Below are positions 14,585-26,447 of a DNA stretch of 64,000 bases, in pieces (position 1 is the first letter of the stretch; each line of letters begins with the position of its first letter). Made by a program: the position numbers and the translations under genes. A model generated the notes under the pieces. That model was not told the origin of the DNA, did not search any database, and worked only from the letters and a program-made list of their open reading frames with translations. This stretch comes from Oculina patagonica (Eukaryota), in assembly GCF_052425735.1 (NCBI RefSeq), contig NC_135766.1, forward strand, positions 11,594,001 to 11,658,000, written 5' to 3'.

Positions 14585-14697
14585 TCAGAGCACAGCATAA
14601 GCAATAACTGCTAGAATGCCTATCAACACTGCTACGATTATCAAAACATTCCAATTGGTCCTTAAATCCTCTTGCACACTTGGCTGCGAAGTTTCAG
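14585..14697 (-). CDS. C-terminal transmembrane (tail-anchor) exon of gene C
   Basis: Strong acceptor tttcttttctctag|CT GAA. Reads (A)ETSQPSVQEDLRTNWNVLIIVAVLIGILAVIAYAVL*. Donor gg|gtgagt lies 2 nt after the stop. Confidence 0.7.
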
Positions 14698-23600: not shown

Positions 23601-26447
23601 CTCAGAGTTATCATTATGATAATAATATTCACTGATAAACCACAGGCTTACCATCCTATGTTTGTGAGGTCATGTAAATATTCAAATTTATTCACTAATT
23701 GCTATTGTTAATATTGAAGCTTTCTAAAATCCGCTTTTACGACTCGTATTTGTAATAAAATGAAATAGAAATATTTTCGCATTGTTAAGGTTTGCTTTAA
23801 TGCTGTTTTCTTGGCGATCTGTAGCACGCGAGAGCAGTTCTAAAAGTTTAAGGCCCCAACCACACTGACACGGGTAAATTTGATAATGGAGAAATCAGAT
23901 AACGCCGGGTAAATGTTTTCCGTCCACAGTAACCCGGGTAAATTTGAAAACGGTTCAGTGTGGACGGTTTGCCTAGCCGGAGAAAAAAAGATGCGTTTTC
24001 AAATTTACCTGGGTTAGTGTGGACGTGGCCTAAGTTTTCGACTCCTGTATAGAATACAATTAGGCAAGGCGTGCAACTTCGACATCGACGAATCGGGTAC
24101 CGCCTCTGGAATGTGTCCGAAAAAACATATTTCCTTGAATCGCTTTCATTGGAGATCTCGGTCCTCGAAAGAATAGCCTTCGAACTATAGTCTGGCCCAA
24201 TTTGAGTGCAATCAGTTCGTGCCGTTGTCCTTTAAAACTAGCTGGAATATCAAATTAGGTCGTAAATTTGCCGATTTACGATGATTTGTACCACCTACTT
24301 GGACAATTTATGTAATTGTCACTGAAATTGGTCAATTTTTTTGCCTATGCCCTCATCTTGAAAGCCAACGTGTTCCACTTCAAAACGTCCTCTTGGGTAC
24401 CCCAAAGATATACTGTTAAAACAGTATATTATTCTTGTGCTGCCACTGAAGAGAGGTAAACTATGAATACTGTGGTGTGACATAACAGAAGCGGAATTCT
24501 AAAAGAGCACTTTTAAAAAGAGAGAGAAGGCATTAAATTCAAATTTGCACAATTAAACCACCATAACTTGCTGGCAAACTTTAAATTAAAAAATCCGCTT
24601 CTGTTATGACACTCTAGAAGTATTGACTGATTAGTTTTTGACTACTCGTTCCGCAAACTCTGCCCCAAAATCAAGTTCTTCCCAATTTGGAACTAACGAG
24701 GCTGTACCATCGCCGTTAAGTGCAATCTACCAAATAAAAGATGACATTTATAGTCTTTCATCATTTCTGTATGTCTCTGAAAAATTGAGCTTAATTGCGC
24801 CTATAACAGCCGAGAAATGGGTGTTTTAAAAGGTGCGGGTCAAGCAAAATTTCGCTTTATGAATTTATTCATGCTGTAGGTATCCCCCGCGACCTTAAGG
24901 TCGGCATACAGGAGGGGTTTATCGCCTAGAGCATGCTGACAAACTTGAATGCGTTAACACTTCAACTAGGTGAGTCGTCTTTGTTGGACTTTTTGGGAAA
25001 CTTTTTACAGTAAGAAGGACTGAAAATTTGAAGTATGAAATGTAATTATTCAGTTAAAAGATTTCAATTTACTCTAGTCTTGGCGCACATTTGCTAATCA
25101 CTACCACTCACTTCATGCAATCACAGTACACAGGGCGATACCTGCCGAATTAAACCACATTTTTAATCTTTTAGACGGTAGAACATAACAATATCAAATA
25201 TTCTTACCATGAACCATATTCCACATCTTCTCAACAAGACAATTACACTGTTTCTCGAAGCTGTATACGTAGTGGTCTTTATAGCGGTTCCGCAGCATTT
25301 GAATTTCTTGAAGTCGCTCTGCTCTGTCTTTCTGGCGAACACCAGCAATTGCCTTTGCCCACTCTTTAGGGTCATCAGAGTCTACCACAAAAGATTTGCC
25401 TGAAGGTTCAAAGCGCAGTGCATACCCAAAACCTGAGATACCACTCACAAGAATGGGAAGACCAGCAGACAACGCTGCCAGTGCAGTCAATCCGAATTCC
25501 CCTGTCATTGATGGCATGATAGCAAGATCAACCTCACAAAACAACTTTTTCAATCTTTCCTTGCTTTGCACACATGTTCTAATAATCAGTTGCTCTCTAG
25601 ATATTCCACTCATCAAAAAGTTGACTGCAACTTCTTCCTGTTTTCCATCAGGCGCACCCACGACAATAAGACGGTAAGTTCTGTCCATCAGTTCAACTAT
25701 TGCTTTAGCAGCAGTGTCATATCCTTGGAGAATGAAGTCCTCAGGATCACCACTGCCAAAGATCAACACCTGAAAATTGTCACTCTCTTTTGTTGCTTGT
25801 TTTACATCTAAAAAGTCACTGAATATGTCTGGAGTCAGCTGATATATGTCTATGTGTTTCTCGTACGAATGCAGCAAAGAACAGTAGGCCTCCTGCACCT
25901 TGGGTCCGACTGCAACAACAAGATCTGCCAATTTACACAAGTCTACTTTAGTTCTTATGTCCTCCTTACATCTTATGGAAAAGACCGAGTTCGAGTTGAA
26001 CATTCCGAGTTCTGCTGGCACAGTATGCATTACCTGCACCCACTTACAACTGTGCGACTCGCTTATGACTTGGGCTTGTTTACCAAGCCTCTCTCCATGA
26101 CCCAGTACGATGTCAATGGCAAGGTCTCTTGGTGGGAAGCTCAGCCAGTCGAGGGGGTCGTTGTAGCCTGGACGTCTCTCTGCTTCTCTAACGATAACAT
26201 TGCAGTTTCTAGCAGCTCTCTTCTCTTCTTCAGAACAGGCAAACTGTGGGACAAGGAGAGTGACTTCTATTTGCTTGTGTTTGGCCAATAATGTGGCAAG
26301 CTGTCTGTTTATGGTTGACAAGCCTCCCATAGATGAACTCCACTCACTGGCCAAGAGAGTTACTCTCAATGCTGTGTCGGACATCCCTGATTTACCTTGT
26401 GCTGGTACACCTTGAGATGTGTCAATGACAGTGGGGGGAGACAAATC
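14585..26447 (-). CDS. Gene C: GT4(pseudo)-Roc-COR-GT4-TM ROCO-family protein; exons 26447-25208, 22997-22618, 22319-21550, 20368-20119, 19768-18974, 17688-16452, 14697-14585
   Basis: All six junctions are GT-AG with matching phases (1,0,2,0,0,1); total 4785 nt = 1595 codons including stop. Roc motifs GQGRAGKTS (G1), ESTLGV (G2), WDFAGQ (G3), GTHAD (G4). COR-like region LDFYHDLGVIV...WLIDLFK...MELYGLIA...YFVPAQL...GFVPHGLFAQLL. 5' end unresolved. Confidence 0.85.
15390..15700 (-). mobile_element. tRNA-derived SINE remnant
   Basis: Minus strand GGGTTCGATTCCCGTTGGAGATTCAGGTTTTTTCTTTGCCCCACGCTCGTGAC (B box). Related copy at ~63640-63720. Confidence 0.6.
16452..17688 (-). CDS. C-terminal GT4 exon of gene C, catalytic motifs intact
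   Basis: DEWSSSAGGLSTLNRELA, VVHTAPE, CGRGDAEDFKLKGYD, PSRTEGFGLIVLEALSAGLP (E-x7-E). 1237 nt, phase 0 to 1. Confidence 0.92.
18017..18632. mobile_element. Non-autonomous TIR element
   Basis: CGTTTCTTTGGGAAAATCCAAA at the left end is inverted as TTTGGATTTTCCCAAAGAAACG at the right end. Confidence 0.6.
18974..22997 (-). CDS. Roc GTPase and COR domain exons of gene C (four exons)
   Basis: VPHEIQAQGHKAEAAYQKALKKGSVKVYRGRIMLLGQGRAGKTSL; SVWDFAGQHLYYASHSIFL; PVFIVGTHAD; GEEVPIRWFNFEK; C-terminal Cys/His-rich segment CVACAHC...CDKHRSVCCTHDDC. Confidence 0.9.
23283..24894 (-). mobile_element. Kolobok-like non-autonomous element (copy of 52431-53344) in gene C intron
   Basis: Ends CCCCCGCGACC|TTAA at 24894. 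24430-24894 and ~23290-23375 are reverse complements of parts of 52431-53344. Left boundary approximate. Confidence 0.6.
23852..24030. mobile_element. PIF/Harbinger-type MITE
   Basis: TAA|GGCCCCAACCACACT...AGTGTGGACGTGGCC|TAA. Confidence 0.65.
25208..26447 (-). CDS. N-terminal GT4 exon of gene C, catalytically degenerate
   Basis: SEWSSSMGGLSTINRQLA is retained. GSGDPEDFILQGYD has lost the R and K, and PSMTGEFGLTALAAL has lost the E-x7-E motif. Confidence 0.9.

Follow-up and report, generated by a model that had tools for sequence, protein, structure and literature searches.

How is a coral gene built that seems to place a ROCO-type GTPase between two glycosyltransferase domains, and what might its product do? 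This question is raised by a window of 64,000 nucleotides from Oculina patagonica (RefSeq assembly GCF_052425735.1, contig NC_135766.1, positions 11,594,001 to 11,658,000; the window is the whole stretch of DNA analyzed here, and positions below count from its first letter), in which the minus strand revealed seven long open blocks between 26.5 and 14.6 kb. An earlier description made from the letters only (hereafter the sequence-only reading) had joined these blocks into one gene for a ROCO protein with a glycosyltransferase of the GT4 type on either side of Roc-COR and a transmembrane (TM) tail. Our analysis identified the gene as LOC144665651, an annotated but uncharacterized, reshuffled member of a large coral immune-type family. 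Its front GT4 domain (GT4a) has lost the catalytic motifs, while the rear one (GT4b) has kept them, and judging from domain content and genomic context, its likeliest role would be that of a GTP-switched glycosyltransferase effector of the coral immune or conflict repertoire.

Gene model and transcript evidence

A search for relatives seeded with the fifth open block (exon 5) led to the entry "uncharacterized protein LOC144665651 [Oculina patagonica]" with 1573 amino acids (P0192), which matches the window exactly in seven blocks. Counted from position 26447, the exon lengths add up to 1240 + 380 + 770 + 250 + 795 + 1237 + 113 = 4785 nt, i.e., 1595 codons in seven phased exons, as proposed in the sequence-only reading. 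While the junctions and phases of that proposal are those of the annotated protein, its beginning had to be revised: position 26447 is a splice acceptor (ttctctttcag/GAT) and the first ATG is found at 26384, giving a protein of 1573 residues, with 26384–25208 (minus strand) as the coding part of exon 1 and the stop codon included in 14697–14585. The splice sites of all seven exons are canonical, with AG acceptors following pyrimidine tracts and GT donors.

Transcript contigs from four runs were compared with positions 20501–26500 of the window. The joint 25208/22997, which the sequence-only reading had singled out for verification and at which 2210 nt are skipped (GT..AG on the minus strand), was found in contigs of three runs (X1, X2, and X3) from two studies, and the joint 22618/22319 in one run (X1). 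Because these contigs represent spliced RNA molecules, the link between GT4 and Roc is real: the front GT4 and Roc are joined on spliced RNA. The junctions 20119/19768, 18974/17688, and 16452/14697 lie outside the compared stretch and are based on the annotated model and their canonical sites; for 18974/17688, a paralog (P0197) also revealed the same adjacency of COR-B and GT4.

Contigs reaching 26449 (X2, X5) end in loose stretches that are identical to 35820–35846, letters which occur once within the window and form the exact continuation of these contigs. They mark the 3' end of a 5' exon (35818–35846, minus strand) with a donor after 35818 (GAG/GTAAGC); only this 3' end is defined. An ATG was sought in its frame continuing into exon 1, and none is present. 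Therefore, the 5' exon is non-coding, translation starts from 26384, and no exons for leucine-rich repeats (LRRs) are located upstream, although the sequence-only reading had reckoned with such exons as a possible refutation of its architecture. Two alternative gene models were rejected on these grounds. Upstream coding exons are ruled out by the in-frame stretch of the 5' exon lacking an ATG, and an interpretation of exon 1 as the end of a separate upstream gene (terminating in GKNI and a stop after the donor) is ruled out by the spliced contigs of three runs together with the non-coding 5' exon.

A further loose contig end at 26391 (X3, X2) probably derives from a paralog with identical 5' 150 nt. 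Within the 2.2-kb intron 1, between exons 1 and 2, contigs of all four runs had many loose ends in the region 23300–24900, where the summed contig depth was very high and rose to about 2000; this region is probably a repeat or transposable element. The 9.4-kb first intron harbors, just downstream of the 5' exon, an open frame of 251 codons (34890–35645, minus strand) that revealed neither a Pfam match nor similarity to the exons of LOC144665651.

ROCO core, GT4 domains and C-terminal tail

The Roc domain (PF08477, E = 2.5e-14, detected in two stretches) is split over exons 2 and 3. Exon 2 (22618–22997, minus strand) encodes its N-terminal half with G1 and G2 as well as the start of an insert, and exon 3 (21550–22319, minus strand) the remainder of the insert and G3, G4, and G5. 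In agreement with the sequence-only reading, the motifs are intact (G1 GQGRAGKT, residues 431–438; G3 DFAGQ, 609–613; and the Roc-type G4 THAD of the form THxD, 705–708), and 152 amino acids rich in D, E, K, Q, and S separate the G2 threonine from G3. A G2–G3 insert of 116–221 amino acids was present in 49 of 49 cnidarian relatives. In an AlphaFold2 (AF2) model of Roc-COR, the insert is mostly disordered (predicted local distance difference test, pLDDT, below 50 for residues 114–185 of the modeled piece), while the part outside the insert folds with a predicted template modeling score of 0.77 (49-sequence alignment).

Exon 4 (20119–20368, minus strand) encodes COR-A, which matches PF16095 at residues 774–928 with 35.0 bits, just below the cut-off of 35.3 and thus borderline by Pfam, and which Foldseek aligned to the COR of Roco and LRRK proteins. 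Exon 5 (18974–19768, minus strand), encoding the end of COR-A followed by COR-B, matched no Pfam family when searched alone and has 259 relatives in the representative library; it was assigned by fold alignment to 6hlu, 3dpu, LRRK1/2, and 3dpt. The top 37 PDB fold matches of the Roc-COR model are all ROCO proteins, among them C. tepidum LRR-Roc-COR (E = 2.5e-15), LRRK1, LRRK2, M. barkeri Roco2, and the COR-only structure 3dpt, and the alignments to 6hlu, 3dpu, LRRK1, and LRRK2 extend over about 700 columns. Matches at the sequence level were found to M. barkeri Roco, C. tepidum Roco, and LRRK2. We consider it established that LOC144665651 belongs to the ROCO family, with Roc plus COR-A and COR-B. 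Searching the whole protein against Pfam detected GT4, Roc, and COR families only and no LRR, ankyrin, kinase, or death domain, and the earlier description as a ROCO protein lacking LRR and kinase stands. The same search revealed no NACHT or NB-ARC NTPase, though neighboring genes carry one; LOC144665651 is NLR-like in its switch-effector logic, yet it is not an NLR/STAND receptor.

Both flanking domains match PF20706 (GT4 in conflict systems) far above generic GT1/GT4 models, with 226.5 bits for exon 1 (25208–26447, minus strand; residues 1–393, E = 6.8e-67) and 281 bits for exon 6 (16452–17688, minus strand; E = 2e-83) at a cut-off of 26. GT4b, the rear domain, keeps R1356, K1365, and the E-x7-E pair (E1442, E1450), which aligns with the E-x7-E of WaaG. 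Its model (pLDDT 86) revealed MshA, BshA, glycogen synthase, and WaaG as the best folds, with template modeling scores of 0.73–0.78 to MshA 3c4q and BshA 3mbo. Since these best folds, together with sucrose-phosphate synthase, are metabolic, and since a C-terminal anchor would place the protein on an organelle membrane, LOC144665651 might also be a housekeeping membrane glycosyltransferase for glycolipid, glycoprotein, or small-molecule synthesis in the endoplasmic reticulum or another organelle, regulated by Roc-COR and with no immune role. This is quite improbable, as the best Pfam match of its GT4 domains is the conflict-system clade, the gene lies among tandemly clustered DED-NB-ARC-TPR-GT4 genes, lineage-specific expansion with fast-changing architectures is seen for both modules, and no ortholog of the same architecture was found among the sampled relatives from other corals.

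In the front domain, GT4a, all four donor-binding or catalytic residues are lost: S211 stands for the Arg, Q220 for the Lys, and A303 for the second Glu, while the first Glu is displaced (TGEFG versus TEGFG, with G295 and the Glu shifted to 296). They are kept by its closest relatives (74–76% identical), and the four columns are at least 90% conserved in 37 aligned coral GT4 domains. The sequence-only reading had likewise called the GT4 behind COR intact and the one in front of Roc degenerate. On its own branch, GT4a displays a ratio of nonsynonymous to synonymous substitutions (dN/dS) of 0.42–0.52 versus 0.14–0.25 on the branches of its relatives (about threefold, Nei-Gojobori), i.e., its constraint is relaxed. 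Its exon is a mosaic: codons 1–115 have a branch dS of about 0.10, codons 116–393 (278 codons) one of about 0.41, and the latter carry the raised dN/dS (0.43), which suggests that the first 115 codons are young or were recently gene-converted. GT4a thus retains the family fold but, by its motifs, is probably not an enzyme.

What the front domain is still good for was approached by complex prediction. GT4a against GT4b reached a score of 0.72, while the best of three controls reached 0.00; in the benchmark for this score, the same level was attained by 51 of 78 solved complexes and by 2 of 108 mismatched pairs (eukaryotes: 39 of 65 and 2 of 126). Contact agreement between runs was at least 93%, partner pLDDT at least 82, and the GT4a fold itself was predicted confidently in the complex run (pLDDT 83–84). 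The predicted interface is pseudo-symmetric and built from the same N-terminal-subdomain helices on both sides (GT4a residues 71–110 and 144–152; GT4b residues 1216–1256 and 1291–1298). These models support a GT4a–GT4b pairing, which may also form in the real protein.

A different fate of GT4a is suggested by its sister paralog about 120 kb away (G000:C9:11471000-11497094; loci L002, L009, and L010). This copy harbors a GT4a-type exon 10.7 kb upstream of its Roc exons, the 5' 150 nt of which are identical at the protein level to LOC144665651, but which is interrupted by an in-frame TAA and a frameshift; the annotated protein (P0191, 847 amino acids, Roc-COR only) starts at MVHG, the very end of the broken exon. 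Thus, LOC144665651 might be the same switch-effector protein with GT4a as a functionless relic that is drifting to loss after shuffling, the working protein then being Roc-COR-GT4b(-TM). The decay in the sister paralog would fit, as would the loss of all four key residues in GT4a only, the threefold increase of dN/dS, and the existence of paralogs with Roc-COR only (P0191) or with Roc-COR-GT4 (P0197). Against a relic, the 393-codon frame of GT4a is still open and spliced into mRNA, its dN/dS, about 0.43, falls clearly short of 1, and in the complex run its fold is predicted confidently and its pairing with GT4b passed the controls. We therefore treat the relic as possible rather than probable, and between a regulatory pseudo-enzyme and a decaying relic we see the former slightly ahead.

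Exon 7 (14585–14697, minus strand; 37 codons), part of the annotated protein and bounded by canonical splice sites, would add a hydrophobic tail of 22 residues (WNVLIIVAVLIGILAVIAYAVL; residues 1552–1573, Kyte-Doolittle value 3.18) with which the protein ends. Judged by this composition, LOC144665651 is probably tail-anchored. Copies of exon 7 were sought in the genome at the DNA and protein levels and none was found; because the exon is single-copy, its use has no support from paralogs. Read-through of the exon 6 donor leads to a stop at 16444 (...QGMS-stop) with an AATAAA 87 nt downstream, and read-through of exon 1 to a stop at 25196 (...HGKNI-stop). Both GT4 exons harbor a stop three or four codons past the donor, and a GT4 exon is therefore able to serve as an internal or as the last exon. 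In the annotation of the paralog protein P0197, the C-terminus reads ...HGMS, and a soluble isoform of LOC144665651 without the TM tail is plausible.

Genomic context, modular origin and proposed role

Several immune-type genes are clustered in the window, each of them encoded on the minus strand. One neighboring gene encodes DED-NB-ARC/NACHT (47205–48953), TPR (44808–46262), and an intact GT4-conflict domain (41839–43179), the exon of which is 78% identical to GT4b; this gene (41839–48953) is probably P0251 (ACROYT_G030868, 1470 amino acids). A second gene of the same type is located at 59.6–63.4 kb (DED-NB-ARC 61933–63354, TPR 59595–60647). The GT4 exon at 5045–6277 is strongly degenerate, lacking the GG loop and the Arg and having both Glu of E-x7-E replaced, and a partial GT4-conflict exon (4–444) is cut by the window edge. 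Across the genome, the Roc exon has at least 80 matches, and GT4 exons number at least 88. Cluster and expansion point to an immune or conflict effector, a role that is absent from the sequence-only reading. Apart from these genes, the window is AT-rich and contains one run of N (13562–13706), flanked by overlapping frames on both strands (13263–13872) that encode proline/serine-rich low-complexity sequence and gave no Pfam match.

How such architectures come about can also be seen from the locus, in which the three modules each have different nearest relatives. GT4b is 78–80% identical to the GT4 of the neighboring NB-ARC-TPR gene and of P0197, GT4a has its closest counterparts in the GT4 of LRR-Roc-COR-GT4 genes (74–76% identical), and in the Roc-COR tree LOC144665651 and its Roc-COR-only paralog group with Oculina kinase, Death, and TIR forms (Shimodaira–Hasegawa-like approximate likelihood ratio test, SH-aLRT, 93), separate from the clade of LRR/OTU-Roc-COR-GT4 proteins. 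Relatives of the Roc-COR part are flanked by NACHT, kinase, Death, TIR, caspase, HEPN, Neuralized, OTU, LRR, or GT4. Each GT4 exon begins in phase 0 and ends in phase 1, the reverse is true of the Roc-COR block, and the tail exon begins in phase 1; due to these matching phases, GT4 and Roc-COR modules can be chained. On the basis of these sequence relationships, the architecture of LOC144665651 is a recent product of exon shuffling within the tandem array.

From such an origin, one might go further and regard the gene as a recent chimeric by-product, either emerging or on the way to being lost, that arose through tandem duplication and exon shuffling and is transcribed, while no function of the whole would be under selection. 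None of the about 200 sampled coral relatives shares its architecture, its TM exon is single-copy, the 5' third of the mosaic exon 1 appears to be recently converted, and copies are decaying nearby (the GT4 exon at 5045–6277 and, in the sister paralog, the broken exon). However, none of the seven exons is interrupted, all splice sites as well as the Roc G motifs and the catalytic residues of GT4b are intact, and the transcript appears in runs from two studies, which makes a mere by-product very improbable.

On balance, and with modest confidence, we favor LOC144665651 as a cytosol-facing ROCO-type GTPase switch of a coral immune or conflict family, with the live GT4b as its output and the dead GT4a as a regulatory partner. 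The Roc-COR core would act as a nucleotide-dependent conformational and dimerization switch, and GT4b as a retaining GT-B glycosyltransferase that modifies a molecule of the invader or the host. GT4a, a catalytically dead copy with its fold kept, would pair with GT4b via the N-terminal subdomains and would most likely serve as a regulatory or occluding partner, not as an enzyme. The term "GTP/dimerisation-regulated glycosyltransferase", used in the sequence-only reading, appears reasonable for the predicted domains.

Several points weigh against this proposal. We know of no activity, ligand, localization, expression response, or substrate for any metazoan GT4-conflict protein, and LOC144665651 carries no recognizable sensor repeats (LRR, TPR, WD40) that would trigger the switch. 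That the GT4a-type exon is broken in the sister paralog points to decay instead of a new role. The passed complex prediction may reflect only a general habit of GT4 enzymes to form homodimers, and this kind of test is also passed by close relatives of true partners. In the predicted interface of GT4a, 1 of 19 residues is changed versus 24% elsewhere (Fisher p = 0.056); selection on the interface was considered and rejected, because the whole of the first 115 codons has a low dS, so that the low change is explained by the homogenized 5' third (dS 0.10 versus 0.41) and interface conservation is not evidence of selection. Finally, the TM tail depends on a single-copy exon, and the stop at 16444 with its AATAAA would offer a soluble alternative.

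Within the favored switch-effector reading, a more specific mechanism can be formulated, in which the pseudo-dimer with GT4a holds GT4b closed on the membrane until a GTP-dependent rearrangement of Roc-COR, or a sugar-nucleotide or glycan-like ligand in the dead pocket, releases the transferase. We consider this version rather unlikely. If it were true, a pseudo-glycosyltransferase would be the sensor or autoinhibitory module in a ROCO protein lacking LRRs, and LOC144665651 would represent the first small-GTPase-gated glycosyltransferase in animal innate immunity.

Coral relatives and comparison with known systems

The GT4 conflict clade was defined by Kaur, Iyer, Burroughs, and Aravind (eLife 2021, PMC8195603) as a predicted effector with more than 500 paralogs in A. 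digitifera. According to the same study, GT4 is one of 24 domains found at the C-terminal variable position of bacterial AP-GTPase-COR proteins, where DAP kinase has its kinase, and GT4 is predicted as the effector downstream of AP-GTPase-COR. Its listings for A. digitifera (PMC8195603, Figure 6 source data 1) include 'GT4+sGTP+sGTP', 'GT4+DEATH+sGTP+sGTP', and 'sGTP+GT4+TM', with 0 occurrences of 'GT4+sGTP+GT4'; the doubled "sGTP+sGTP" is probably due to the long G2–G3 insert. Fusions of glycosyl-transferase-group-1 domains to NACHT/NB-ARC were described from Acropora as a new combination (PMC4083563) and are among the domains most enriched in its non-syntenic expansion regions (PMC12314368). 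In annotated proteomes of Acropora, Montipora, Pocillopora, Stylophora, Porites, and Oculina, we found more than 40 coral proteins that combine GT4 with Roc-COR. Thus, the architecture is unusual, as the sequence-only reading had it, in comparison with textbook ROCO proteins, but GT4 plus Roc-COR forms a class that is already catalogued in PMC8195603 and among these coral proteins. The expectation that it had not been characterized before does not hold at the level of computational cataloguing; by experiment, the class is not characterized.

For closer comparison, 96 Roc-COR and 102 GT4 relatives from corals and anemones were sampled, limited by length and rank. Among these about 200 relatives, a double GT4 around Roc-COR or a hydrophobic tail was found only in LOC144665651, and the combination of a double GT4 with a tail anchor appears unique in this sample. 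This protein would be set apart by its repeat-less Roc-COR being flanked by one dead and one live GT4, and by the single-copy exon of the putative tail anchor. PADLOC models gave no match for any of its three parts. Proteins P0243–P0250 (Acropora, Montipora, Porites) harbor two GT4-conflict domains and no NTPase, which shows that it is common in this family for GT4 domains to occur in tandem within the same protein chain. In coral genomes, few domains have expanded as strongly as the GT4 'conflict' glycosyltransferases, which occur in fusions with immune modules such as NACHT, NB-ARC, Roc-COR, and Death. As LOC144665651 combines a GTPase switch with a live and a dead transferase in one compact, repeat-free polypeptide, it offers a convenient construct for the question of the switch-controlled effector and its glycosylation target, while the general picture of ROCO proteins is unchanged by it.

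With LRRK2, LRRK1, and C. tepidum Roco, LOC144665651 shares Roc and COR-A/COR-B (Foldseek E-values of 2.5e-15 to 1e-11) and the G4 motif THxD. In contrast to them, it lacks LRR, ankyrin, armadillo, kinase, and WD40 domains, harbors the disordered G2–G3 insert of 152 amino acids, and has a predicted glycosyltransferase output instead of a kinase. GT4b has the fold, the Arg/Lys pair, and E-x7-E in common with MshA, BshA, and WaaG (retaining GT-B, CAZy GT4), but at 14–19% identity, and it is embedded in a signaling protein, whereas those are free-standing metabolic enzymes. In streptococcal GtfA-GtfB, involved in the glycosylation of serine-rich-repeat adhesins, an active GT4 is paired with a non-catalytic GT-B partner. 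For GT4a and GT4b, this pair may serve as an analogy only and as functional speculation, as it consists of two separate bacterial proteins and no GTPase.

Among corals, the (LRR/OTU)-Roc-COR-GT4 proteins (P0208, P0209, P0220, P0260, and P0263; Pocillopora, Stylophora, Porites, and Oculina) have the same split Roc with a GT4 directly after COR-B, and their GT4 is closest to GT4a (57–76% identity). They differ by LRR and/or OTU in front, an intact GT4, and the absence of a tail TM and a second GT4, and their Roc-COR forms its own clade (SH-aLRT 95) apart from LOC144665651. Acropora digitifera LOC107347432 (P0151/P0152, 'GT4+sGTP+sGTP') shares the N-terminal GT4 before a split small GTPase, but it possesses two Roc-COR units and its GT4 is intact. 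Acropora LOC107338309 ('sGTP+GT4+TM') is listed with a small GTPase followed by GT4 and a TM. Together, these two cover both halves of the LOC144665651 architecture, though none of the listed proteins has both GT4 domains.

The bacterial LRR-AP-GTPase(Roc)-COR-GT4 proteins (PMC8195603; e.g., WP_107867044.1 of Agitococcus lubricus) share with LOC144665651 the Roc-COR followed by a C-terminal effector slot with a conflict GT4, a link to bacterial conflict systems that is based on the Pfam family and PMC8195603. Compared by their published description, the bacterial proteins alone carry N-terminal LRRs as a presumed sensor, while no second GT4, no C-terminal membrane tail, and no long G2–G3 insert are reported for them. 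In LRRK2 and DAPK, the slot that GT4b holds in LOC144665651 is occupied by a kinase.

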